From Chara braunii (lineage: Eukaryota; Plantae; Charophyceae): a stretch of 64,000 bases of DNA. Location: positions 8,329,887-8,393,886 of the forward strand of contig BFEA01000001.1 in assembly GCA_003427395.1 (NCBI GenBank), in the 5' to 3' direction. Position numbers and translations under genes: made by a program. The notes beneath the pieces are model-generated. The model saw only the letters and a program-made list of their open reading frames with translations. It made no database searches and was not told where the DNA came from. Below are positions 4,760 through 63,849 of this stretch, piece by piece. Position 1 is the stretch's first letter. Every line of letters begins with the position of its first letter.

Positions 4760-5230
4760 GGCCCTCGCTCCACTGCTCTCAACATGCACAAAAGACAAAA
4801 ATCATGGCGGTGTACCTTTCCATGTTTTAGCGCAAGATTCAGTCTCATTTTGCACATTTGCAGAGTAGTGAGCCTCGCTCCACCTATGGAAGTATTGCAT
4901 ACTCTCCCTCATGAGGTCGCTAACTGGCGGCGACCGAAACTAGTCGGGGATGCCAGCTCCTCGGTCGTCATAACGGAGGTGCAAGCTATGGAATGTGCTT
5001 CATTGTTGTATTCTGTGGATTTTTTGGACATCATTTTCACATACTCCTGCTGCGCAGTGCAGCTATGCGTTGGGCGTTCGTCGCTCTTGACCGACTTTGC
5101 TATTTTCTATAACTCGCTCCAGTACTCTCCAAATGCGCAAAATGAGAATGAATCTTCCACTAGAACATGGAAAGATACACCGCCATGATTTTTTGTCTTT
5201 TGCGCATGTCGAGAGTAGTGGAGCGAGGCC
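4760..5230. mobile_element. Inverted-repeat family with ~110-bp arms (further copies ~5455-5550 and ~49900-50150)
   Basis: 4763-4870 is the reverse complement of 5118-5228 (caaaagacaaaaatcatggcggtgta / tacaccgccatgattttttgtcttttg); the same motif occurs twice in tandem at 49.9-50.1 kb. Confidence 0.65.
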
Positions 5231-5799
5231 ACGGCGTACTAGAGAAAGGTGTCTTTTCTTCACTTTTACTTTTTTCGCGAATACATTATGTTCTTGACCG
5301 TCTCAAATTTCGTGTCGTGCAAAAAAACGTTTTTTTCTCGAATCGTTCAGACCAAAACAGTGTCGAAGGACTTCGCCAAAAAACGTTTTTTTCTCGAATC
5401 GTTCAGACCAAAACAGTGTCGAAGGACTTCGCCGCACCGCTCAAGAAAAAACCGTGCCAAAAAATGAGAATGCATCTTCCGATAAAGCATGGAACTATAC
5501 ACCGTCATATTTTTTTTGTCGTTTTGCGCAGTTGGTGAGTGGGTACGGCGAGGCACCAAGTCGACCGATTTTTTTTTGATTTTTTTTTTTTTTTTTTTTT
5601 TTTTAACACAACGCATTTCATTTCATTGCAAGAAAAAACATCGTTCGAGGCCGGGGATCCTCACAATTCACCCCGGTGTCATCCTCTGGCAGCCTCAGCC
5701 AGTTTAGCTTATACAATGATCAAACGTGAGTCCTACTCGCTTCCGGAGGAGAGAGGATCGGGGACACTTTCTTCCCCCCCCCCCCCCACCCCCTCCTCT

Positions 5800-6025: not shown

Positions 6026-6078
6026 CTATTCCCTCCTGATGAGGCTGGCTGGCTCCAGCCGAAACGGGTCGAGGATAG
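6026..6078 (+). ncRNA. Type I minimal hammerhead ribozyme
   Basis: Stem I ctat(tc)cctc / gaggatag; core CTGATGA 6036-6042; stem II ggctgg/ccagcc; GAAA 6061-6064; minimal stem III; GTC cleavage triplet ending at 6070. Confidence 0.88.
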
Positions 6079-7789
6079 CCAGATTCTACCGTCTTTTGGA
6101 CGGTAGGTTACCATAGCCAAGGCTATGGTGGTACTCTTCGTGTTTTCACTCTGATTATTAAGAGTATCCTATTCCGAGTTTTTCACATTTCTGGCATTTT
6201 GTCTCACTCAATGTGCTTGTGTATGCGTACTGCCGATCTGAGCACGCTGGTATTGGCGCTTCGCTCTCCTTCCCAATCCCAATCCGTTGAAACTGCAACG
6301 ATGCAGCTAATTATGATGATGATTATGATGATGATTAGCAATAATGATGATAATTATGATGATGATTAGCGTGGGCCCTACGCTCTCAAAGATGACGCGC
6401 AAGTCAAGAAATAATGCTCCCAGTACCTGCTTAGGATTTAGTTTTCGTTCATTTGTTTCCTGGGGAAAAAAAAAAAAAAGAGTAGGAAGAGGGGAAATAC
6501 GGGAAGAGAGGCAGCAGAGGAAATGTAGTCTGCTTAAAAAAAAAAAAAAAAAAAAAAAGTTGCCTTTCTCTTTCTCAACAACGTTTTCCACGCTAATGCG
6601 TTCCTCCTTTTTTTTTTATTTTTTTATTATTATTTATTTCCAACGCTAATGCCTTCCTCAACTCAATGGGTGACATAAGCGATAGAGTTTTTCAAATGTG
6701 CTGAGTTGATGAGTTGGGGGCGGCGGCGGATGATACATTTCACAGGTCCTGTTATTTCGCCCTCCTCACGGGGCCCCTTCCTTGTCTTTATGAGGATACG
6801 GGACCCCCCCTCGTTGTCTTTGTGGGGATACGGGACCCCTCGTTGACCCCGTCCCCGCCCCCACCACGTTATCTTTGTGGGGGTGTGGGATCCCCCCTGG
6901 TAGTTATTTTTATTGGGGTGTGGGATCCCCCCTGGTAGTTATTTTTATGGGCGTGTGGGAGCCCCCTAGTTATCTTTGTGGGGGTGTGGGATTCCCCCAG
7001 GTAGTGATCGTTATGGGGGTGTGGGACCCCCCCCGGGGCGAGGTCCCACTAGCGAAGGGAATAAGATAGAAATCCTGAATCTGCCTATGTTTTATTTCAG
7101 AGATACAGAAAAGCTGTTCTATCTCGATTTCCTGCTCCTGTCCTCAAACACGTCCAGATTCAGGCATTCAATCGGATGCTCTTTGCTAATGGGACCACGG
7201 CCCTGGTTATCTTTATGAGGAAGGGGGTGGCGAGGTAAAGCCGGGGGGGGGGGGTTATCTCTCGGAAATGACGCCTCGTACGGTTTGCTGTTGGCTTTGT
7301 ATTGATTGATGGGACGACCGACGTGTGGATTGCGGTTCTGGTTGTCTGCCAGAATGTCAGAAGAGCATGAGCATGCTCATGTCTTTGTCAATCCCGAGGA
7401 CTGCAACTGGTTAAAGAAAAGAGTATGCAATATATTCCATACGTGAGGAGTAGAAAAAAAGAGAAAAAAAGAGAAAAAAAGAGAAAAAAGAGAAAAAAAG
7501 AGCATGATCGGGGAGGCGCATTGTCCGTAGATCGGTCGGTAGATCGTCGGTGGACGTATCGTCGGTGCATCGCGCGTCGTGTTCTGAGGAGGAGGTGGAG
7601 GTGGAGGTGGAGGCGAAATTCTGATCGGAGGAAACAGGGGTTTGCGGAGAATGGCGCTGCGTGTGGGGTGTGTGGAGTGGGGAGTGTGGAGTTTGTGAGC
7701 GTGCATAGGAGCATAGAAAACGAGGTGGCGACAGGAATCATCTTGGCGTGTCTGATTGATTGGTTAGCTGTGTGAAGCGAGCAAGGAAT

Positions 7790-7919
7790 CGATCGATTAA
7801 TTGGTTATCGACTCCGTCGATCAATCGGTTATCAATCAATGAATCAATCGATCGATCGATCGATCATTCAGTCAATCAATTGCTACTGTTAATCGATCGA
7901 TCAATCCATCAACCAATCA

Positions 7920-7966
<47 letters not shown>

Positions 7967-8660
7967 TACTCGAACAGTCAAACAGTCGATCAATCAATCA
8001 GTAAGTCAATCAATCAGTAAATCAATAATCAGAATCAATCAATCAATCAGGTTATTTGGTGAAAGCTATTAATCGTATCTTGTTCTGTCATCCAGATCTC
8101 CTCGTCCTTTCGAAGACCTTCCTCCTTTCCCCCTTATTGTGAATGATAATCCCATTTGCCGGGCGGGCGGTGACTACCCCCTTCTTCCCTCGAATACAAC
8201 ATACGGTCATTGTAGCTGTATTTAGACTGAACGATACCCCAAATACAGCCATAATGACCCGCAATATGCCAGCGTAGCAACGGAATCTTTTTATTCAGCG
8301 TTGTACCCTCCTCTCCCATTAACCCGTCTTTGCCTTCCCCGTTCTTCGCTTCTCCTCTCCCTCCCCCCCCCCCCCCCCCCCCCCTTCTTCGCTTCTCCCC
8401 CATTACTCCGTGTTTTCTCCGACTGTCCGTATATGGGGGTATATACTGATATACAGGTTGATTGATCACTGATTGCTTGTTGATTGCTCGGTGACTGGTA
8501 GATTGACCGTAGGGGTATATACTTATGGGATTGGTTGTTGATTGGTTGATCGATCGCTGGTTGGGCGTTGATTGACTGTGATTGGCTGATTGATTGTTGA
8601 TTGATCGTTTTGATTGATTGGTGATTGGTTGGTGATTCATTCTTGGCTGATTGTCGACTG
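7790..8660. repeat. (AATC)n / (GATT)n degenerate microsatellite blocks (also 12250-13020)
   Basis: Visible tandem aatc (7790-8050) and gatt (8460-8660) arrays. Confidence 0.85.
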
Positions 8661-8878
8661 TTTCGATCGCCAGGGGGGGGGGTGGAGGCATGTGGGTCCC
8701 AGATCACCCACCACCTTTTCTGCGTACTTTTTTTTTCTTTTTTTTTTTTTTTATGCCAGGAAATCAATCCGTCGATTCCATCGTCATCTGTTTCTTCTTC
8801 CTCCCTTTGACGCGCCCTATAACTCCATGTCACCGAAGCTTTTCCTAGCGAGCAACGCCTATTCAGCGGATGCGATTC

Positions 8879-8952
<74 letters not shown>

Positions 8953-9134
8953 CTCTATCTATATATTTATCTATCTATCTCTCTGTCTCCGTCTCCCTCT
9001 CTCTTCCGCCTGTAACCGCTCAAGCATCCATCCACAGGATTATGTTTTGCCTCTATGAAGGAGCGGCGTTGTCAATCTGCTTGTGGTGGGAGGACACTTT
9101 GGGGATCTCAACTCCCAAGTCCCAACTGACAGAC

Positions 9135-9209
9135 GGGCTCTGCAGACTGTTGAGGGTTCAGCCTCCTGATGAGTCGGTGAAACTCCGACGAAACAGTTTG
9201 TCACAGCCC
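9135..9209 (+). ncRNA. Type III hammerhead ribozyme, apparently intact
   Basis: Stem III cagactgt(9143-50)/acagtttg(9193-9200), extended by gggct/agccc; GTT triplet ending 9151; stem I gagg/cctc with loop gttcag; CTGATGA 9166-72; stem II gtcgg/ccgac with loop tgaaact; GAA 9190-92. Confidence 0.9.
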
Positions 9210-9239
9210 CTCGTTTGTTGTCCTCTTCTCTCTCTCTGC

Positions 9240-9470
9240 CTACGGTTTACCGGGCAGTTCTGTTTGTGACGATATATAACCTACGGTTTACCGGGCAGTT
9301 CTGTTTGTGACGATATATATATATATACATATACATATATTCTCTCTCTATATATATATTCTCTATATATCGTCACAAACAGAACTGCCCGGTAAACCGT
9401 AGGCAGAGTCTCTATTCTCTCTCTCTGCCTACGGTTTGCGGGGCAGTTCTGTTTGACGATATATATCGTC
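9240..9470. repeat. Direct and inverted reiterations of the 3' end of the hammerhead element, within (AT)n
   Basis: cctacggtttaccgggcagttctgtttgtgacg at 9239-9271, 9280-9312, inverted at 9371-9403, and again ~9428-9458, each abutting atatat. Confidence 0.85.
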
Positions 9471-9721
9471 AAATAGTATAGTATATGATATATGATATAC
9501 TATATATATATCGTCAAATATATTACATATATTTATATAAATGAGGCGGAAAGTTGGCTTCCACATATGTAGACATGAAGTTGATGGGTTCCAATTGGGA
9601 TAAGAAAACTAACTCGAGTTAAGATGATGGTAAGTGTGTGTTTTAAGACGAGAACAGAAAAATGGTAGTGTGATTGAAGTTCAACGTGGAGGGGGAAAAA
9701 AATAAAAAAATAAAAATAAAT

Positions 9722-11440
9722 TCAACCTGGAGGAAAGAGCGCGGAGGTTGCTTCTCTAGGCTCGTGCTGGGATCGAGGTGTTGGGTCGGCCGTGGGCCGT
9801 CGTTGTCGTTTAGCTATTTTCGCTCGGATGTGGCGCCGTCCGCGCTGACCTGGTCCTCTGCACGTGATTCCGGTCCCGATGGGCATCATCCGTTCGCATC
9901 TCGCTGTAGAGGGAGGGGGAGGAGGAAGAGGAGGGGCTTCCACCAGCGGCGGTGCTGTCCATCTTCCGGCCCGGATCCTGATCTGCAGTCTTCTTGAGGT
10001 CAGTGCCCTCTCTGCGCTGGTGGTCCAGTGCAGATGATGACTTGACACGCGACTGCTTCGTTGAAGTTGTTGCTGCACTTCCTCGGACTCACCGCTCTCC
10101 TCCTCCTCCTCCTCCTCCCCCTCCTTACCGCTTTCGTCATCATCTTCTCCCCTGCTGCCGCTCGTGTTCCTGTCCTCGGCTACTCTCACATTCCCCGCGT
10201 TCAGCTGATCCCTTCCTCCTCCTCCTCCTCCTCCTCCTCCTCCTCGTTTGCCCGCATGATCACCACTCTCCTCCTCCTCCTCCTCCTCCTCCGTCTGGAT
10301 GTTATCTGTGTCGTTCCGATTGGTCACCTCCTCGTCCTCCTCCGTTCCTTCGTCGTCGGCTGTGTACGACTGCTTCTCGTTCAGCTCATCTGTCACCCTG
10401 CCGCTGCCTTTCTTGTCGGTATGGTTATCATCATCGCGATCCCGACCGATGTCGGCCACCTCCTCGTTCTCTTCGTCTTCTCCTTCCCCGTCGTTCTCAT
10501 CATAAGCCCCCTTGCTTCCCTTTCCCGTGCTGATGATGACGTGGTGGATGATGGCCACGATCGGCTCGTCGTTGTCTTCAGGGACGTCATCCTCGTTCTG
10601 GTTAAGGCGATCCCGATCCCGATCGCGAGGGGGAGGAGGAGGTGCACATCGTGAGGAGGGAAGTTGGTGCTGCTGCTTATGTGCTTCGTTCGCCTGATAC
10701 CCACTTATCCCCTCCTCCTCCTCCTCCTCCTCCTCCTCCTCCTCCTCCTCCTCCTCCTCCTCCTCATGCTCATGTTCAACTTTCTCCTCCCCCACCTCTG
10801 CCGCGTCTCTCTCCTTGCCCTCGCCCTCGCTGTCCTCCTCCTCGTCCTCAGGCTCGTATTCATGGTCATCGTTCACCTCCTCTACCTCGGCTATCTCTGT
10901 GGCCATGCCCTCGCTGTCGCCCTCGTCGTCGTCGCACTCTCCCCCGTTGCGCGCGGTGTGGGCAATGCGCGCCGTGTGGTGGTGGTCCTCCATTTCTACA
11001 GCTGCAGGTGTCCCCGCTCGGGATCCGTGTCGCGTTAAGAGCGCATTAGCGGGGTCATCGTCTTCCTCGATTTCTGGGACCGCAGGCTCTTGATGAGAGC
11101 TTGTCTGAGGTGCCAGGTCATCGGCCATGTCAGCAGCTTCGTCAGCAACCTCTTCGTCATCGTCGTCCTCATCATTATCCTCGTCATCGTCCTCTTTGAT
11201 GTGATGGGGTATTTGTAGGCGAGAAGATCGACTTCCCTTGTCAGTTCTCAGCGACAGTATCGGTGGGGTTGGGCTGGTCGTCTTCTTGGTTGTCGTCGCT
11301 GCTGAGTTCATCTTTGGCTTTGGTGCTTTTTCCTGTTCTGTTGCGTAGCTGGGAGACGCAGAGAAGCGAGCCCGAGCTGGAGGGTGGAGGCATGGACATG
11401 GTGCTTCTCGACTCTTGTGGTGTGCATTGCGTATGTACAC
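9722..11440 (-). CDS. Hypothetical acidic low-complexity ORF (572 aa); coding status uncertain
   Basis: Long open frame rich in E/D with triplet-phased repeats; no recognisable domain and no ATG at the annotated start. Confidence 0.3.
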   Translation of the reverse strand: MYIRNAHHKSREAPCPCLHPPARARFSASPSYATEQEKAPKPKMNSAATTTKKTTSPTPPILSLRTDKGSRSSRLQIPHHIKEDDDEDNDEDDDDEEVADEAADMADDLAPQTSSHQEPAVPEIEEDDDPANALLTRHGSRAGTPAAVEMEDHHHTARIAHTARNGGECDDDEGDSEGMATEIAEVEEVNDDHEYEPEDEEEDSEGEGKERDAAEVGEEKVEHEHEEEEEEEEEEEEEEEEEEGISGYQANEAHKQQHQLPSSRCAPPPPPRDRDRDRLNQNEDDVPEDNDEPIVAIIHHVIISTGKGSKGAYDENDGEGEDEENEEVADIGRDRDDDNHTDKKGSGRVTDELNEKQSYTADDEGTEEDEEVTNRNDTDNIQTEEEEEEEESGDHAGKRGGGGGGGGGGRDQLNAGNVRVAEDRNTSGSRGEDDDESGKEGEEEEEEESGESEEVQQQLQRSSRVSSHHLHWTTSAERALTSRRLQIRIRAGRWTAPPLVEAPPLPPPPPSTARCERMMPIGTGITCRGPGQRGRRHIRAKIAKRQRRPTADPTPRSQHEPREATSALFPPG

Positions 11441-11723
11441 GTGTATCGTCTATCTGCATTTACACGTGGCAGCCGCTCAGCGTAGTAGTAGTCGTAGTAT
11501 TAGTCTTCGTAGTAGAAGTTGTACCAATCACGCCGGTCACGGAGCGCGCGCACGTGGGGGCTCGGCTCGCTCCTTTCTCCTTCACCCACGCGCCAGGTTG
11601 CTGGTCGATGATGCTGAGAAGGTATAACGGTTTCCCACAGCAAACGCTTGTGTTAGGAATCAGAAACGTTCGTCGGATGAACCTGGCCGGAGTGCACGGA
11701 TACATACGGCACTGGTTGCCTCA

Positions 11724-11754
<31 letters not shown>

Positions 11755-12277
11755 TCAGAAAACGTTCGCAGTAAGAGAGAGAAAAACCGTTTGGTGGTAT
11801 TCCCTCCTCCTGTTCTCTTGCTAGCGAAGCCGCAACAGATACTACGACGTTATCGAAGGGATTTGTTACTTTGCTGGCTCGCCTATCTTTTTTTTTCCCC
11901 TGTCCCCACGTGTCGTCGTCCTCAGGGATGATGTGGTCCTCAGGGATTGCTTGTAAGATGCTGCTGGCCAGCCCGCGGTCTCGATTGACCATGTGATTCA
12001 TGCTCGTCTGATTACCACACTCGCGCTCTCTCATCCTCGCGCTAAGGAGGTAATCTTAGGCATATAATACTCAACGGCATCGGCTTGGTTGACCTTATTT
12101 GCACACGTGTCAGCCCGCCATGGGGCCATCACGATTGACGAAGCCTTCCTATTCGACCCGGTTCTCCCATTATGATTATCCACTTCCTGCACGTGCGCGT
12201 GACACAATCAGTCTAAACTACGGGGTTTGGTCAACATCCCACCCAGTAATAGATTGATCAATCAAGCAGTCGATCCC

Positions 12278-19892: not shown

Positions 19893-19904
19893 TGGTATCA
19901 GAGC
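19893..19904 (+). promoter_or_regulatory. Primer-binding site (initiator tRNA-Met)
   Basis: TGGTATCAGAGC one base after the 5' LTR. Confidence 0.95.
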
Positions 19905-21939: not shown

Positions 21940-24900
21940 ATGCCACGCTCAACCAGGAACTCTCAATGCGCAGCCGCCGAAGCCGCCGCTGCTGCCACCG
22001 CCTCCACCTCATCTGCTGCTAACTCCTCAGCTGCCGCTACCACCGCTTCCTCCCCCACCATGGCTCAATCATCCAGCATTGATATGTCCAGCATCCGCAC
22101 CGACTTCGTCGATAGCATCGTCCGCAACCTCGTAGGTGAGCAAACACCAGCACCCGATGCCGCCATCGACCTCGCGACACTTTTCCGCATGATGACATCC
22201 CTTCAATCATCCATGGACGACATCCTACATTCGTTTCCTCCATTTCTGCTCGCGTGACCACCATTTAAAGTCACACCCCCGCCATCCAGGTCGTCACCAC
22301 CACATCCCCCCCCCTCACCTCGGGTGCCACCACCCTTCTCCCATCCTCCGCCTCCACATCTACACCAATCACCCCGTCCGCCACATCCACCCCCCTCTCC
22401 GCTAGCACATCATCCACACCTCAGCTTTCATCCACCACTACCTCCACCTTGGTCTCCAAGACGACAACCCTCGCCGTCACGCAGTCATCAACCATTACCT
22501 CCCAGTCAAAACCCCTCATGACTTCATCCACTATCACTTCCACCCATACCCAGATCACCCCCACACCTCAAGCCTTGCTCCCCCCGTTATCCCAATACCT
22601 CCTCCATCCACACTCCTCCCGACCAATCCCACTACCGACTTCACCCGGGTACCGTCCTCCTTACCCAAACTTGATTTCAACACCCTCGCCACCACAACAC
22701 CCTTAACGGGTAACGTTCCCCTTTCCTTCCAGTCAACGGATATCCCCCCCTTCACTGGCCTTCCCCACGAGGACGTCTTCGTTTTCCTCAGCAGACTATA
22801 CGATGCCTTCTCCCTCCACAACATCCCTGTCACACACACTGGCTCCCTATTGCCAGCACCAGGCTACAGGAAGGCGCTGCTCGTTGGTGGTACACCGAAC
22901 GAGCTAACCGCCAACACGCAAACGAGGAACCCCATTCCTTCCTTCAATGGGCCAATCTCATCGCCTGCACATTCCAACCACACAAAATGGTCGATGACTA
23001 CTTTGAGCAACTTTGTTGTCTTCGACACAACGACTCGACCGACCGCTTTGTCTAATACGTCCGTGCGTTGCGGCAACACATCCCCCTTGACTACGTCAGC
23101 GATGCCGCATTCATCTCCTGCTTTAAACAGGGATGCCGCAAGGACCTAGCCGCCTCCCTCGTCCACGACCCCCCAATGCCCCTCTCCGATCTCCTCAACC
23201 GCGCCATTCACCTAGACAAATTCGTCACCTCGTACAAGGACGCACTCGCATCCGCCTCACCCGGCCCACGATTCTTTCATAACATTGTTGACGAAACATC
23301 TCTCTGCCTCTGATGAGTTCTCTGCCCCCGACCCCCGGCATCCTCTCCGACCCACTAGACACCACATCACTCTCCTCTGACGAACTCTCCGCCATTCACC
23401 TCATGCGAATGGAAAAGAGAGAACGCTCCAGCCATCCTCTCATGAACACCCACCCAACCCATCTCAAGAAACTCATGCTGGAGGAGCGAACCTACCTCCA
23501 AGCAAAGGGTGGTTGTTTCCGATGCCGATAGTTAGGACGTCTACAGACAAACTGTCCAAATGCCGGATATTTTACAGGTTAGGCACCCAGGTTCGCGGCC
23601 CCCCGACCCGCCGTCTCCACATCCGCCACTCTCAGTCCCTCCTCCTCATGAACACCGTCCCAGGATCACCATGAACCTGTCCCGGCATCGACGACTAGTC
23701 TGCCGGTCATCCCATCGGTGACAACCTCCACCCCACCAGTGGCCCATTTGGCATCGACAATACGTTTGCCTGCCCCCTCTTCGGTGCCGCATATCCCACC
23801 GGACGACCCCTAGGTGTCGCAACCCTCGACGCTTGACACCCCCCTCATTGCCACATGTTCCGCAGCCCTCCTTCCAAATCCATCCTTTGTCACCTTCTCT
23901 GATGTTGTTGAGGAACAAGTCTGACTCGATCGGCTTGTTCGATTAGGCAATGAACAACGCCGCCTCAACACCAGTATCTCGATCGCCAACTCATCACACT
24001 TTCACCTCGAATTCATCACCGCCACCCTTGGTGCGTCTACGACTAAGTTTCGGTCCCTCCTCGACATTGGAGCCACTGGTAACTGCATCACCGACGCGTG
24101 TGTCCGGAAAGCCGGTCTTACCTATACCGGTTATGACTCCCCGATTACGATTCGTTTAGGGGACAAAGACACTGCCGTCGTAGTAGACCGCACGGTTCCT
24201 GAGACCACCATGACTGTTGGAACCCTCCGCAGTGAGGTCTCATTCGATGTCATGCACTTAATGTGCAACATCGTTTTGGGAACACCGTGGCTGGATCGCT
24301 ACATGCCATACTCGTTCCACCCCAACTTCATCCGCCTTACCAACCCCCCTGACACAACCATCGACATTCCCTATCTTCCCTATCCCCCCTCCCCAAGCTC
24401 CGTCACCGCACACCAATTCCTTCACATGGCTCGTACGTACCCTAACTCCACCTACTATTGCCTTGTCCTTTATTGCGAGCGTCCGGAGGACTTGCTTCCA
24501 ATGGACAAACCCGACCAATTCCCCCCCTCCAACCCCGCCCTCACCTCCATCCTCGACGAGCTCAAGGACGTCTTCCCCGAGTCCTTACCCGCCGGATTAC
24601 CTACGGATCGTGGTGTGTCTCACACCACCGATTTGGAGCCCGGTCACTCTCCACCGTGCCGCCCTCCGCACCAACTCTCCGTCTCAGAAGCTGAAAAAAT
24701 GAAGCGGCAGCTCAATGAACTGCTTGAAAAGGGATTCATTAAGCCAAGTTCATCCCCCTTTGACTCCTTGAAAAGGGATTCATTAAGCCAAGTTCATCCC
24801 CCTTTGACACAAGCTGCCTTTTCGTCAAGAAAGGCGGAACATCGGAACTCTGGATGTGCACAGACTACCGCGCCTTGAATCGGATCACGATCAAGAACAA

Positions 24901-27900
24901 ATACCCCCTACCTCGGATCTCTGAGCTTCTTGATCGCCTCCCTGTAGCCAAATATTTTACCAAAATTGACCTCCGCAGTGGCTTCCACTAGATCTGCATC
25001 TGCGAGGAGGACACCCACAAGACCGCATTCTGTTCTCGCTTTGGGCACTACGATTTCCTTGTGATGCCCTTCGGACTCACCAATGCCCTTGCCACATTCC
25101 AATCCACCATGAACCACACCTTCCGCGACCTCCTCGAAGTCTGTGTCGTCGTTTACCTCGATGATATCCTTGTCTATAGCCCCACCTTCGAGTCCCACCT
25201 TCAGCATCTCCGCCAAGTCCTCTCTATCCTCAGAGAGCAAAAATTATACGCCAAGCTCAACAAATTCACCTTTGCACTTCAAGCGATGAATACCTTGGCC
25301 ACATCGTCTCAGCTGAAGGAATACGCATGGACCCCTCGAAGGTCACCGCCCTCGTCGAGTATCCACCACCCAAGACCATACTCCAACTTCGTTCATTTCT
25401 CGGCCTTGCCAACTACTATCGGCCCTTTATCTGCAACTTCTCCGACATCTCGTACCCCCTCCATGAACTCTCCCGCAAGGATGAACCCTTCACTTGGAAC
25501 GACCGCCGCCATAACGCCTTCGACTTCCTCAAACAAACCATCACCACGGCCCCCGTCCTCAAGATCGCCGACCCCTCTCGACATTCCTACCTTACCACTG
25601 ATGCATCCGAATTCGCCCTTGGAGCCGTCCTCTCGCAACACTTCCCTCGCGACACCTCTGAAACCCCCTCCATCAAAGACTCCCCCACCCACCCCGAGGC
25701 TCCACCCGGTGAGTACCCCATCGCCTTCGCTAGCAAGAAGCTCCTTCCCGCGGAGATGAACTACCCCTCCAACGAGAAGGAAATCCTCGCTGTAATCCAC
25801 GCCCTCAAAGTCTGGCGCCTGTACCTCGACGGGCAATACTTCACCATCCGCATGGATAACACCATCGTCTCCTCTATCCTCACCAAGAAAGACGTCACGC
25901 CTTGCCAAGCCCGTTGGTTAGACTGACTTGCCCAATTCACATTCACCATTTGCCACATCCCTGGCAAAAGCAACCGCGTTGCCGACGCCCTCTCTCGACG
26001 CCCCGACCACAAACCCTCCGAGAAAGTCTACGCCGCCATGACTCATATCCAACTCCTACCATCGCTCCACCACCGCTACACCCAAGGCTACCTCTCTTGC
26101 CCGGATTTCTCGACAATCTACAACAAACTTCGTGATCTCGGCTCAATCCACGACTACTCCCTTCACGACCAACTTCTTTACATTGACACCAAAGGCACTT
26201 TGCATCCCGACGCACGTGGCCTCCGTACCCAGCTCTTGGCCGAGCATCACGACGCCAAGACTGCGGGACACCTCCGGTTCCAGAAGCCTTCGACACCATC
26301 TCTCGTTACTTCTATTGGCCTTCCCTACTCGTTGACGTCAAAGCCTACATTTGCGCATGCCCCACATGTCAAGTCGTCAACCCCTCAATACAATCATTGC
26401 CGATCCCCACCCACCGGTGGCAGTCCATCTCCACGGACTTTGTCTGCTGTCTCCCCAAGACCGACCGCGGACATGATTGCATCTATGTCATTGTTTGTCG
26501 CTTGACTAAATGGGCCCACTCCATCCCTTGCACCACATGCCACAACGCCAAGGAAGTCGCCATTCGCTTCTTCGACCATGTCGCACACCACCACGGTCTC
26601 CCCGAGAACATCATCAGCGACCGTGACCCTCGCTTCCTTTCACAATTCTGGAAACACCTCTTTAAAGCCTACGGAACCACGCTCAAGTATAGCACTGCAT
26701 TCCACCCACAGACCGATGGACAAACCGAGAAGATGAACGATACTTTCCAAAGAATCCTGTGGAAATATTGTCATCCACATCAACATGATTGGGATCAATT
26801 GCTCACCGCCGCCGAGATCGCCTACAACAATGTTGTCTGTCATTCCATTGGCATGTCTCCATTCTACCTTGACCTAGGCTATCATCCGCGCTTGCCCTCC
26901 GACTTCCTGCTCCCCTCGCAACTCTAACCCCTCCACCCCCTGCCCTTCTCTCAATGAACGAGTAACAACAATGAACGGACTCCTCAAAGAAGCTACCGAA
27001 GCTTTTGAACGAACACAAGAACAACAAGCCAACAAGACCAACAAACATGGACGAGACGTAACATTCAAAGTAGGGGACAAAGTCTGGCTCTCCGCCAAAC
27101 GCTTTGGACACGAACACGGCTTGTCCAAGAAACTCTCGAACAAATGGCTCGTTCCCTTCCCCATCATTGAACAAACCTCCCACGTCAATTACAAGCTCCA
27201 ATTCCCTCCTGACATGAGTCGTGTCCACCCTGTCTTCCACGTAGAATATTTAAAAGAATACCATGAATTCCCACAGGCCCAGAATTCGTAGTAGAATCCA
27301 TCATAGGTCGACAAACCACACAAGTATCAGACCATCCGGAACCAATCACAGAATACAAAGTTAAATGGACGGGATACCCTGACGAAGAATCCACATGGGA
27401 ACCTCTTCCTAACCTTAAGAATGCTATGAAACTCGTTCGTGCCTATGATCGTGCTCACCATACTTGCAACCACCATACTTGCAACCGCACAAGCCGCACA
27501 TTCGTACGGAGTTCTATGCGGAGTTCCGTGCGGGGGGTGCCTGTGCGGAATCGTGCAGGTTTTTTATTTTTATTATTATTATTATTATTTTTTTTGGGAG
27601 GGTGGACGGGGGGGTGTATGACAGGAAGATGGGGATATAACGAGAGGAAGGGGATATGGAGAGGAGGAGGATGTGGAGGAGGAGGACGACGAGGACAGCG
27701 AGGACGAGGAGGAGGAGAAGTAGAGATGGGGAAGGAGAAGAGATGGACGGAGGGAAAAGAGGAAGGGCAGGAGAAGGAGGACGACCGGGAGGAGGAGGAG
27801 ACATGGACGGCGAGGAAGGGGAGGACTCGAGGAAGGGGAGGACATGAGGAAGGGAAGGAGATGAGGAGGGATGGAAGATGAGGAAGTACGAGGAGGAGAC

Positions 27901-30717: not shown

Positions 30718-30723
30718 TATTTG

Positions 30724-30823
30724 AATTTGGACCGTTTCTTGATTCATGGGTGTAATCCTTTGTGCAGGGGCCATGCTAATCTTCTCTGTATCATTCCAAT
30801 GTTAAACGGATGTGCCGAAGGAC
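30724..30823 (-). pseudogene. U6: U6 snRNA retrocopy with A-rich tail
   Basis: Minus strand gtccttcggcacatccg..gatacagagaagattagcatggcccctgcac..ggtccaaat, followed by (aaaaat)n. Confidence 0.92.
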
Positions 30824-31980
30824 TGGTCAGAAAGTTGTACTGGGAATGGGTGGATAGTAGAATGCTGCCGCCATCGCCGCCTAGAGTATTTTGCTTGGTT
30901 TCTGCCACCGCTCTGTGTGGTTTTGGGTGCGAATAACAAGGGGGGGTGCTAGTGTGCATGCCATGGGGTGAAGAACGTTGAGAAGGTGGGGGAAAGGGAA
31001 GAGTGAGGGTGGGGCAATGTTGCAATCCGTGTGCCATGGGGAGGGGGGGATGTTGATGTGGATTGCAAGATGCTCTGCACTGTACATATGATGGGGCTGG
31101 GGAAGGGAAGTGTTGCGGGGGGTTTTGCAGCATGCCTATATCTGATGAGCTGGGGGGAAGGGGGAGTTTTCGGAGGTGGTCATGAGATGCTCGTCATGCA
31201 AGAAGTGGAGTAGCAGCAGAGGGAGTGTTGAAGAGGGTGGAGGGGGCTTGCGTTCACTGGGCGAGGGAAAGGGGGAATTGTGCAGTGGGTTGCAGGATGT
31301 GCTCCTTGCAGGGAAGAGCGAAGGAGGGTGGTACACGAGAGTGTTGAGGAGGTTTTGCCTGGAACTCGTTCCGCATAGAGGTTAGGTTGAGCAGAATATG
31401 CTGGAGGAGGGTTGGGGAACGTGTTGTGCGTGCAAGAAGGTGGGCTGTGGGAGTGTTAATAGGGGGTTCGGAAAGGCTGGTGTGCAGGTAGAGGCGGAGA
31501 GGAGAATGTGAAGGGGAGTCAGAAGATGCTTTGCAGACATGGGGTTTGTCGAGGGTGGTTGTGATGTGTGCCATCTACGGAAAGGGGGATGAGCGGCAGT
31601 ACGATGTGGCTTGCAAGAGGAGCTCGGCAGGAGGTATTGGGTAAAGGGGCGTAAATGGGGTCGCAAGATGCGCTGCCCTCAAGAACAGGGGGAGGTGAAG
31701 AGTCAAGGGGGTTGGAAGAATCTTCGCACTAGAGATGGATGGTGATAGAATTTTATGGTGCTTGGAGTGTGCGCAGGTGAATGGTGTTTTGAATCAAGGG
31801 GTTTATAATACTTTATATTGCTTTTCCAAAAGCGTATTTTAAGAGTGAACTTAGGGCTCGAAGTTTGCAAAGGAACAAGCCGGTTCCTTCTCCTACTCAA
31901 CGCCCTAGGTAGCGGAAACATATGTAATAGAAAAAAATGCTGACTTTTAAATGTATACCCGTCTGGATTGGTGTGAACAG

Positions 31981-40740: not shown

Positions 40741-40790
40741 TAACGGTCCTAACGGATCCCTTGCGGCACATTTTTTCTTTGTTTTTTCAA

Positions 40791-40907
40791 AGGTACAGCA
40801 CTGGGACTTTCCAGGAGGTCACCCGTCCCTGTACTATTTTGTCCTAACAGCGCTTGGCTACTGGGTTCGGATGGGATTGGGCGCATTAGCTGTGGTATGA
40901 GTGTACT
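40791..40907 (-). pseudogene. 5S: 5S rRNA retrocopy with A-rich tail
   Basis: Minus strand agtacactcataccacagctaatgcgcccaatcccatccgaac..tagtacagggacgggtgacctcctggaaagtcccagtgctgtacct, ~117 nt, then gaaaaaacaaagaaaaaa. Confidence 0.9.
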
Positions 40908-40909
40908 AT

Positions 40910-53124: not shown

Positions 53125-53183
53125 CAAGGTTGTTTTGTCAGAGTTGGACCGATTCATCAGGAGGCTGAACCCTCGGCAATCTG
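53125..53183 (-). ncRNA. Degenerate copy of the type III hammerhead
   Basis: Minus strand cagattgcc gagg gttcag cctc ctgatga atcgg tccaact ctgac aaaa; 21 nt identical to 9152-9172, GAAA and cleavage triplet mutated. Confidence 0.8.
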
Positions 53184-53995
53184 CGGAATCTCTGTATTAG
53201 ATGGTTTGGGTCTTGAACCCTTTGACCCTTGTTGAAGGCAGACTGTCCCCAAGCTGAACATAGCAGCGGTCAGCAACCCTGCGGAGCACCAGGCAACGCA
53301 GTAGAGGCAACACGGATGCAGAGCGCCAAAAACGTCTCCAAGGAACGACACGGCAAGCAGATGGCGTATGAACAGCACAGCAACCACGTAGTGAAGCACA
53401 AGGCAACACAAACAAGGCAACCACAATTCAAAGGACGACAGGGCGAGCGGACCAGCATCTCGGCAGCCGTGTAGCGAAGCACAAGGCAACAGCAACAAGG
53501 CAACCAACCTACAAGGCATGCAAGCAATAAACACGGAATGCACGACCAGTGGATGGGCAGCAAGGCAGCGGAGCAGCAAAGCGGAAGGCAACACCAACAA
53601 CACGGCCACACCACTCAGCAAACACATCAACTTGCAGAGAACCACATGTGAAGCAAGTGGGACAGGCAGCAAGGCAGCAGCGGAGAAGCAGACGAGGGAG
53701 TCGACACATCCAACATGGAGCAAAGCCTCACATTCCCTACTCACATCACCATTGAACCCCGCAGACTGTTGGCTCCCACCACCCACTGAGCCAGGGAGAC
53801 ACTTCGACGAGCATCCGTCATCACCCACAGGCAACACACAGCCCAAATCGAGCGGCCCCCCTAAGAGTGCTGTAGGCACATCAGACAAGGAATGACCGAC
53901 TGTTTGGCACTACTTGAAGGTGCTCAGTTGGCCACACAAAAAGAACTTACAGAGGGAAGACAAACGACATGGGGAAGACAGATATGCATAAAACT

Positions 53996-57528: not shown

Positions 57529-57547
57529 GTTCGGTTCCTTTGTTGCC

Positions 57548-57638
57548 TCTCGATTTATGCATGTCATCCTTCCGCAGGGGCCATGCTAATCCTAATGGAC
57601 CTAATCTTCTTTGTATCGTTCCAATTTTAACGGATGCC
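57548..57638 (-). pseudogene. U6: U6 snRNA copy, truncated at both ends, with internal insertion
   Basis: catccgttaaaattggaacgatacaaagaagattag[gtccattaggattag]catggcccctgcggaaggatgacatgcataaatcgaga. Confidence 0.9.
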
Positions 57639-57849
57639 AGTCAATTTTGGATACAACATGTACACCCCTCACGCATCCTCCTCCCGTTCGGCGAAAGGAC
57701 CCCTGACCAGCATAGATTGCTCCCTGTTACCAGGAGGATTGACTGTCAGCTTGCCGTTCGCATGTATTCCTCCCCGCTCTCTTGCGTATGCCTGTCAGTT
57801 CTGGCAATTGTCCTCTAGAAAATTAGTAGAAAGTACTAGAAACATAAGA

Positions 57850-63064: not shown

Positions 63065-63169
63065 GTCCTTCAGGACATTCATTAAAATTGGAACGATGCA
63101 GAGAAGATTAGGATTAGCATGGTTCCCTGTTGCAAGGATGACACAGATAAATCGAGAAATGTTCCAATT
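63065..63169 (+). pseudogene. U6: Full-length U6 snRNA retrocopy with poly(A) tail
   Basis: gtccttcaggacattcattaaaattggaacgatgcagagaagattaggattagcatgg..aaggatgacacagataaatcgagaaatgttccaatt, then an A-run instead of a T terminator. Confidence 0.92.
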
Positions 63170-63261
63170 AAAAAAAAGAAAAAAAAAAAGAAAGAAAGGA
63201 AGATAGAAGGAAAGAAGGAATGAAGCAAGAGCTGTTAAGTATATAAGTATATATATATATA

Positions 63262-63350
63262 AAACTCCGAAACAGTTTGTCATAGCCCCTCGTTTGTTGT
63301 CCTCTTCTCTCTCTCTGCCTACGGTTTACCGGGCAGTTCTGTTTGTGACG
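63262..63350 (+). mobile_element. 5'-truncated copy of the type III hammerhead element, inserted in (AT)n
   Basis: aaactccgaaacagtttgtcatagcccctcg...gtttgtgacg matches 9180-9271 and is flanked on both sides by atatat. Confidence 0.88.
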
Positions 63351-63849
63351 ATATATATAATATGCATATATAATATACTAAAGCAAACAAAGGATCTGGC
63401 GACATGGTCGGTCGCGGGCCCAAGGGAAACCATTTGGGACAAAGTGTGGCGGGGGGGCGCGGGGTTGGGGGGGGGCGCAGGGTGAGGCCGACGAAAATTG
63501 CTGCGGCAGGGTCTGGCGACATGACAGAAAAGCGTGGCCGGAGGGGGGGCGCGCGGGGGGAGGGCGACGAGAATTGCCGCGGCTGGCGCGACGAAAATCG
63601 TCGCGGCCGGGTCTGGCGACGTGACAGAAAAGCATGGCGGGGGGTCGCGGGGTTGAGGGTTGGCACGGGGTGAGGTGGGAAAAAGCCGGCCGCGCGAGGG
63701 TACGCGCGTAGTGAGTACCGGCCCACGTGCGTGGGTGCAGAAACGGAAACGCGCGGTGCGCGCGCATGAGCAGGCGTTCGAACGAGGCCGCCGTGTTAGC
63801 GGGCAGGCGGGCGGGCAAGATGGCTGCGGGCGCGGATGAGATACGTATC

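Follow-up and report, generated by a model that had tools for sequence, protein, structure and literature searches.

A sequence-intact type III hammerhead within a high-copy, transcribed repeat family of the charophyte Chara braunii

RIBOZYME-BEARING RETROELEMENTS AND THE CHARA LOCUS

R2 and other non-LTR elements carry a 5′ HDV-like ribozyme that cuts upstream of itself, so that new copies keep the ribozyme. For hammerheads the picture is divided by topology: to our knowledge, the type III hammerheads met so far in eukaryotic genomes go with LTR retrozymes of flowering plants and with viroid-like RNAs, while those of Penelope-like elements and animal retrozymes are of type I.

Three groups of described elements come closest to the locus considered here. 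Plant LTR retrozymes have LTRs of ~350 bp, a tRNA-Met primer-binding site (PBS), a PPT, and a 4-bp TSD (PMC4918200). In metazoan retrozymes, units of 150-450 bp that carry a type I hammerhead stand in tandem, and the hammerheads described from Penelope-like elements are type I or minimal (PMC4209133), which counts against a Penelope-like reading of the type III motif described here. Most relevant by host are the Chlamys elements, which Craig et al. (2021) found to be very abundant in Chara braunii, with a bias toward insertion into microsatellites (PMC8557442). One of them, Chlamys-2_cBra, has a “canonical 3′-HHR” together with a gag-like ORF; hammerheads also occur on PLE-X elements and on an endonuclease-less type of C. 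braunii, and in Chlamydomonas non-autonomous Chlamys derivatives share 3′ ends (MRC1) (PMC8557442).

The locus lies in a 64,000-nucleotide stretch of C. braunii DNA (the window). It holds a type III hammerhead followed by a ~75-nt tail, a combination that we call the module and that is an unusual variant of known ribozyme-bearing retroelements. The resemblance to Chlamys and PLE-X elements (PMC8557442) extends to the host, the very high copy number, the heavy 5′ truncation, the partial tandem and inverted copies, the short tail pieces, and the microsatellite targets; Chlamys-2_cBra, too, is reported to have a hammerhead close to its 3′ end, and non-coding derivatives with shared 3′ ends have their parallel in Chlamydomonas MRC1 (PMC8557442). 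Unlike Chlamys, the copy at 9142 has no linked GIY-YIG/RT gene, and it is mainly (TA)n that the Chara module enters, whereas Chlamys targets (CA)n and (C)n (PMC8557442). The likeness of module and published families is one of descriptions, and the main text of PMC8557442 gives no topology for the Chlamys hammerhead.

With the plant LTR retrozymes (PMC4918200) the module shares a hammerhead of type III whose helix III is stable, a non-coding and transcribed character, and a place in the green lineage. It differs in having one ribozyme per copy and the ends of a target-primed microsatellite insertion, without LTRs, PBS, or a TSD of the retrozyme kind. The earlier note on this DNA had seen no LTR or PBS, and indeed no LTR-like direct repeat occurs in 6500-12000 and no tRNA-Met PBS lies nearby, the nearest PBS-like match being at 19893 and the number of such matches no more than chance predicts; the Chara module is therefore not an LTR retrozyme. 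Rfam and ARAGORN found no tRNA head in 8000-10500, a feature by which a SINE would be recognized.

Metazoan non-LTR retrozymes and Penelope-like hammerheads (PMC7229834, PMC4209133) offer other points of contact: no LTR or PBS, short units, tandem copies, and suspected mobilization by Penelope-like elements. The module is nevertheless not a retrozyme of the metazoan kind, since its hammerhead is type III rather than type I (PMC7229834), and only tails are repeated at the 9142 locus. Type I hammerheads of metazoan and Penelope-like elements often have a weak helix III that needs dimers, whereas the 9-bp helix III of the Chara motif should work alone. By analogy with the terminal ribozymes of retrozymes and Penelope-like elements, the Chara hammerhead would process retroelement RNA, and by analogy with the R2 ribozyme, self-cleavage would fix the point where the RNA template for new copies begins. 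Unlike in R2, the predicted Chara cut would remove the 5′ strand of helix III, so that copies of the cut RNA would be ribozyme-dead.

THE HAMMERHEAD AT 9142

The ribozyme and the hairpin around it are placed as follows.

9142-9201, plus strand: complete type III hammerhead ribozyme (Rfam RF00008, fold, our own descriptor, and pattern match)
9123-9220, plus strand: long bulged hairpin that prolongs helix III and encloses the ribozyme, with 9123-9141 pairing to 9202-9220 (minimum-energy fold, identical to the centroid fold)

By its sequence, the motif at 9142-9201 is a real and intact type III hammerhead for which cleavage is predicted. The conserved core can be read directly (CUGAUGA at 9166-9172, GAAA at 9190-9193), and both the 10.1-11.1 pair (G9173-C9189) and the 15.1-16.1 pair (A9193-U9150) are present. 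The cleavage triplet is GUU, with U9151 as the H17 residue (U17, not G), and the predicted cut falls between U9151 and G9152. Helix I (G9152-G9155 with C9162-C9165, 4 bp) closes the hairpin 9152-9165 with a GUUCAG loop, and helix II (9173-9177 with 9185-9189, 5 bp) closes the hairpin 9173-9189 with a UGAAACU loop; helix III (9142-9150 with 9193-9201) has 9 bp, two G-U pairs included. Since helix III is open and helices I and II are capped by loops, the hammerhead is type III.

Folding of 9120-9220 returns exactly the hammerhead junction as the minimum-energy structure (-39.8 kcal/mol, z = -3.7, none of 200 shuffles as good). For the spaced core pattern the window yields a single match where chance would give 0.03, and our descriptor, run over 241 kb (the window and 177 kb of related DNA), finds two complete hammerheads only, at 9142 and 6032. 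The Infernal check that the earlier note had proposed matches Hammerhead_3 to 9144-9199 at 45.8 bits (E = 7e-9 on 601 nt), which is 2.7 bits below the gathering threshold of 48.5 and leaves the motif outside the family at that threshold. For this reason it is absent from a default Rfam gathering scan of the window, which lists three U6 copies and one 5S copy and nothing else. Core, helices, fold, and Rfam thus agree with the earlier reading of a type III hammerhead with all core nucleotides, a GUU site, and a cut at 9151, and the extension that had been proposed for stem III is seen in the fold as a bulged continuation of the 9-bp helix to about 9123/9220.

The second hammerhead, at 6032-6074 (plus strand), is a minimal type I motif with a helix III of 2 bp and no Rfam match at E <= 1. 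It shares letters with the 9142 motif (the helix I pairs CCUC/GAGG and CUGAUGAG), and judging by these shared letters the two could be circular permutations of one another.

COPIES AND 3′ ENDS IN THE WINDOW

Copies were sought by blastn with 8951-9300 against the window, and they define the tail of the module as well as its relatives.

9202-9278, plus strand: 3′ tail, ending ..GGCAGTTCTGTTTGTGACGA and then (TA)n; the same end occurs seven times in the window, in a second Chara locus (L024), and in loose ends of reads
9280-9319, plus strand: tail-only copy of 40 nt, in tandem with the main copy and 100% identical (blastn)
9364-9408, minus strand: inverted, 5′-truncated tail copy, 100% identical to 9234-9278 (blastn)
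9412-9466, plus strand: fourth, older 5′-truncated copy, 85% identical, head-to-head with the inverted copy (blastn)
9462-9473 and 9507-9518, minus strand: two inverted scraps, each with the last 12 nt of the 3′ end, TTTGACGATATA (a 12-mer is expected ~0.008 times in 128 kb)
63262-63357, plus strand: 5′-truncated copy, 96% identical, with the same 3′ end, starting in loop II right after (TA)n
53131-53187, minus strand: old, decayed ribozyme copy, 84% identical (blastn; no Rfam hammerhead match)

Rather than the four related copies reported earlier for the 64 kb, the window holds one intact type III ribozyme, one that is dead (53.1 kb), and one that is truncated (63.3 kb). The tail-only pieces next to the main copy and the two scraps had escaped the earlier note. 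At 53131-53187 the ribozyme is dead because G12 is changed to A and helix III is broken; the upstream part of this copy resembles a consensus derived from reads (see “The family in public reads”). The copy at 63262-63357 is missing 3 nt of the hammerhead core. A further hammerhead copy that had been placed at 54.4 kb yields no blastn match and no hammerhead hit at E <= 5.

The 3′ end itself lies ~70-77 nt past the ribozyme (..TTTGTGACGATATA, 9263-9276) and recurs across copies, which bears out the claim that the ribozyme sits ~70 nt from a defined end. In the form TTTG(TG)ACGATATA it is found seven times in the window, at +9263, +9304, -9366, +9452, -9462, -9507, and +63342; six of the seven occupy one (TA)n tract at 9.26-9.52 kb, in the orientations + + - + - -. 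The tail (9202-9278) is presumably the part that is recognized and primed by the reverse transcriptase, and the 12-nt scraps are read as abortive priming events in the same tract. Because the tails at 9234-9278, 9280-9319, and 9364-9408 are 100% identical in a family that is otherwise polymorphic, they fit one complex insertion event. The older copy at 9412-9466 is without the TG of 9267-9268, like most of the family.

The direct tail at 9280-9319 and the inverted one at 9364-9408 together make a perfect hairpin of ~120 nt (9281-9402). As a microRNA precursor this hairpin was rejected: several Rfam models match it with E values down to 1e-13, yet with scores far below their cut-offs. It could feed small-RNA pathways.

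THE MODULE IN OTHER CHARA LOCI

Eleven further loci (278 kb) were fetched from a public C. braunii assembly around gypsy-type proteins. The module is carried by only one of them (L024), at a single site, a density far below that of the window. The first L024 copy corresponds to 9165-9278 at 87% identity; it starts exactly at CTGATGAG after (GATA)n and ends in (TA)n, which is followed by an inverted 10-nt scrap of tail. The second is 92% identical and ends in (TG)n. Together with (TA)n in the window and at read ends, these flanks confirm insertion into microsatellites as the earlier note had described it. No module copy in the 278 kb reaches upstream of the cut, and a word search with the translation of 9141-9266 found no protein.

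Both L024 copies sit inside a repeat (L024 20980-21724) that the locus has in common with window positions 5120-5710, just upstream of the type I hammerhead, at 76-88% identity. Further repeats of the window match L024 at 89-94%.

THE FAMILY IN PUBLIC READS

Four public data sets, all with the same organism label, were mapped to 9001-9290: two runs of raw oligo-dT RNA reads, a set of RNA-like contigs, and a set of DNA contigs of low coverage. They divide the region into two parts.

9139-9278, plus strand: stretch belonging to a high-copy family, ribozyme plus ~75-nt tail (read and contig depth, blastn)
9005-9131, plus strand: unique upstream sequence outside the repeat family (no depth in any run, no blastn match)

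The family is high-copy and transcribed. None of the four runs has any depth before 9131, and over 9139-9278 depth reaches thousands in RNA and, as summed word depth, millions in DNA, so that only the latter stretch is repeated and 9005-9131 is unique; the upstream flank of the 9142 copy itself (9001-9130) has no reads in any of the four. Blastn of 9005-9131 finds nothing similar in the window or among the 278 kb of Chara loci; this stretch is either target DNA or a co-inserted, unrelated piece.

Upstream of 9139 the reads show another consensus (163 and 513 reads, 94 DNA contigs), to which the 9142 copy bears a weak resemblance, judged by eye, as far as about 9132 (5/7 positions) and not further. 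A query of ~65 nt from this consensus has no match in the window or the Chara loci. The strand upstream of the cut is kept in ~18% of the family by depth, the 9142 copy among them. With about a fifth of the family continuing upstream in this way, the description of the family as apparently non-coding is not borne out, and the module could terminate a Penelope-like element that does code for protein.

Summed DNA word depth rises in steps along the module (59k, 708k at 9141-9150, 1.52M, 2.49M, and on to 3.88M at 9221-9230, across 9131-9230), as expected if copies are truncated from the 5′ side to differing extents. Among true 5′ ends in DNA, the one with most support is 9153, two bases past the predicted cut; 53 contigs have it with TA-rich sequence before it, as do 303 RNA reads in one set (X22). 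This start is favored, not exclusive, and others are common at 9157, 9160, 9162, 9166, 9169, 9180, and 9199-9202. Joints of 9266 to 9153 and of 9278 to 9153 (with TAT between) reveal head-to-tail units that begin at 9153. At the other side, 3′ ends and loose ends at 9266/9278 run into (TA)n in the form GACGA(TA)n, and the apparent second 3′ end at 9266 is a 2-nt indel. The same joints are present in DNA contigs (X1), so the back-joints seen in RNA do not by themselves point to circles; tandem DNA can explain them.

Among the RNA reads, first mates are 4-6 fold more often minus than plus downstream of the cut and about 1:1 upstream, with the minor orientation in constant proportion to DNA depth. 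In a library whose first mates are antisense to the RNA, this would mean that RNA of ribozyme polarity goes from about 1:1 with antisense ahead of the cut to about 5:1 behind it, its upstream portion being specifically under-represented. Such a shift at the cut fits cleavage; oligo-dT bias or a few strongly expressed loci could equally produce it, and no sharp pile-up of RNA read starts or ends is seen at the predicted cut in the reads on 9001-9290.

Variants at >= 10% are few in the family. Position 9151 (H17) has the alleles U, C, and A and never G at >= 10%, and the variant C9147>U keeps its helix III pair as G-U; in the tail the family is polymorphic at 9231, 9258, 9262, and 9267-9268. The alleles at 9151 are unevenly distributed between orientations: C makes up 41% of first-mate-plus and 10% of first-mate-minus reads (17% in DNA), and A makes up 5% and 33%, respectively (1.6% in DNA). 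One possible reason for this skew is that uncut sense RNA has lost the variants that cut best; another, simpler one is that expression comes largely from a few loci.

LOOP-LOOP COMPLEMENTARITY

The complementarity noted earlier between the two loops is present, with UUCA of loop I (9157-9160) facing UGAA of loop II (9178-9181), and random loops of 6 and 7 nt reach the same complementarity 4% of the time. Core and loops are invariant in the family, with no variant at >= 10% across thousands of reads.

Hammerheads elsewhere provide a wider view. A search of the JGI metagenomes and IMG/VR with the exact core and helix II pattern returned 14 and 3 contigs, respectively, all with unrelated hammerheads, mostly phage or bacterial; none is a relative of the Chara element, the flanks differing in every case. 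Four marine phage-like contigs (L011, L017, L018, L020) have a type III hammerhead in which a 29-nt stretch (core, helix II, loop II) is identical to the Chara motif; their flanks are unrelated to Chara, and their loop I differs and is without UUCA (AUA in L011). Other contigs combine a near-identical helix II with the loops UGAGAGU, UGAAAUU, and UGCAAUU. Given this recurrence in unrelated hammerheads with an unmatched loop I, helix II with loop II looks like a common hammerhead solution rather than one shaped for the Chara loop I. A kissing contact between the loops of the 9142 ribozyme is possible from their sequences, and comparison adds no support for it.

HOW THE MODULE MAY MOVE

The explanation that we favor, and regard as probable with a good measure of doubt, is that the intact type III hammerhead belongs to one copy of a high-copy, transcribed 3′ module that is moved by target-primed copying with a Chlamys-type Penelope-like reverse transcriptase. 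The ribozyme and its ~75-nt tail ending GACGA(TA)n would derive from a C. braunii retroelement and would insert by target-primed reverse transcription at (TA)n tracts as well as at (TG)n and (GATA)n. Before copying, the ribozyme would cut the transcript between U9151 and G9152, and the 3′ product of ~115-127 nt, which keeps the tail, would often be copied back into the genome. Copies of cut RNA would begin at 9153 without the 5′ strand of helix III and would no longer be able to cut; the 9142 copy retains that strand and could cut if transcribed. The many copies that start two bases past the cut make processing by the ribozyme ahead of copying plausible, and to that extent uphold the earlier suggestion of a ribozyme-processed retroelement. 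The motif, the family, its ends, its targets, and its transcription are observed; cleavage in vivo, the order of cutting before copying, and the Penelope-like partner are what we infer.

As to that partner, the most likely source of the reverse transcriptase would be a Chlamys-type Penelope-like element, of which the module may be the 3′ end proper or a non-coding derivative with a shared 3′ end. Hallmarks of Penelope-like insertion are found: 5′ truncation, partial tandem and inverted copies at one site, short tail pieces, and microsatellite bias. By Pfam, neither the window nor the 278 kb of Chara loci holds a gene for a Penelope-type reverse transcriptase or GIY-YIG, and the case for such a partner accordingly draws on the insertion pattern and the literature. 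Across 176 long ORFs Pfam reports only gypsy and LINE domains, with Ty3/gypsy alone in the long ORFs of the window.

A narrower version is conceivable, and we hold it only tentatively, as rather improbable: the module would represent a non-coding, Penelope-dependent “type III retrozyme” family of streptophyte algae, most of whose daughters are inactivated by loss of the helix III strand.

The alternative that survives best, although we consider it unlikely, places the motive power in a LINE: a SINE-like, non-coding retroposon would be moved by a LINE that shares its microsatellite-ended tail, with the ribozyme doing no more than trimming read-through transcripts. LINE domains (Exo_endo_phos, zf-RVT, RVT_1) do occur in the Chara loci, the U6 and 5S retro-copies of the window point to LINE activity, and 5′ truncation with a microsatellite tail is typical of many LINE/SINE pairs. 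Moreover, (TA)n is its own complement, and every insertion creates it afresh, so that direct and inverted copies could arise at one tract with any (TA)n-targeting reverse transcriptase; the palindromic target could account for them unaided, and taken alone they do not exclude a LINE partner. What speaks for the Penelope-like reading over this one is that no LINE with this tail is seen, that Rfam and ARAGORN detect no tRNA, 5S, or 7SL head in 8000-10500, that 100% identical tandem and inverted partials fit a single Penelope-type event of a sort not seen with non-LTR elements (PMC8557442), and that Penelope-like elements and retrozymes, unlike LINEs, are characterized by hammerheads.

A true retrozyme, that is, a short non-coding unit between two hammerheads that is excised, circularized, and copied from circular RNA, seems more doubtful still. 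The type III hammerhead is that of plant retrozymes (PMC4918200), transcription is strong and mostly of ribozyme polarity, and back-joints are present in the RNA reads. DNA contigs (X1) have the same joints, for which tandem DNA may be responsible, and the tandem units that are observed start past the cut without a complete ribozyme. At the 9142 locus there is a single ribozyme and none in tandem, with only tails repeated, and neither LTR nor PBS is found.

That the motif is a chance or fossil likeness to a hammerhead, devoid of activity, is very improbable: a score below the Rfam gathering cut-off, an untranscribed flank of the 9142 copy in the reads, and a family of mostly truncated or dead copies would suit it, but all core positions and three helices are intact, Hammerhead_3 matches at E = 7e-9, only one other complete hammerhead turned up in the 241 kb covered by our descriptor, and thousands of family reads contain no variant at >= 10% in core or loops.

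EVOLUTIONARY SETTING

If a charophyte has a non-LTR retroposon that targets microsatellites and carries a type III hammerhead, the plant-type ribozyme would date from before land plants and would be linked to mobilization of the Penelope type. This would bear on the proposal that retrozymes, and perhaps viroid ribozymes too, descend from Penelope-like elements (PMC5680766). Should the “type III retrozyme” reading be true, the family would be a missing link, joining Penelope-like elements with their type I hammerheads to land-plant retrozymes and viroid-like RNAs with theirs of type III; the type I motif at 6032 has the same helix I pairs and core as the type III motif. The Chara family is also a natural example in which thousands of genomic copies, by where they begin, reveal the position of the cut.

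NEIGHBORHOOD OF THE ELEMENT

Beside the element, on the minus strand, lies a 575-codon open frame (9725-11449) of low complexity, with poly-E, poly-S, and poly-P on two strands; it has no Pfam match. A decayed and frameshifted Ty3/gypsy chromovirus with protease, RT, integrase, and chromodomain occupies 23925-27878 (plus strand), and a piece of its reverse transcriptase matches proteins of C. braunii and Closterium at about 60% identity.

The window also has U6 snRNA-like copies at 30721-30824 (minus), 57532-57651 (minus), and 63065-63173 (plus) and a 5S rRNA-like copy at 40790-40908 (minus), all of them probably retro-copies made by a LINE. The U6 copy at 63065 has an A-rich tail, and the truncated hammerhead copy follows 90 nt further on.
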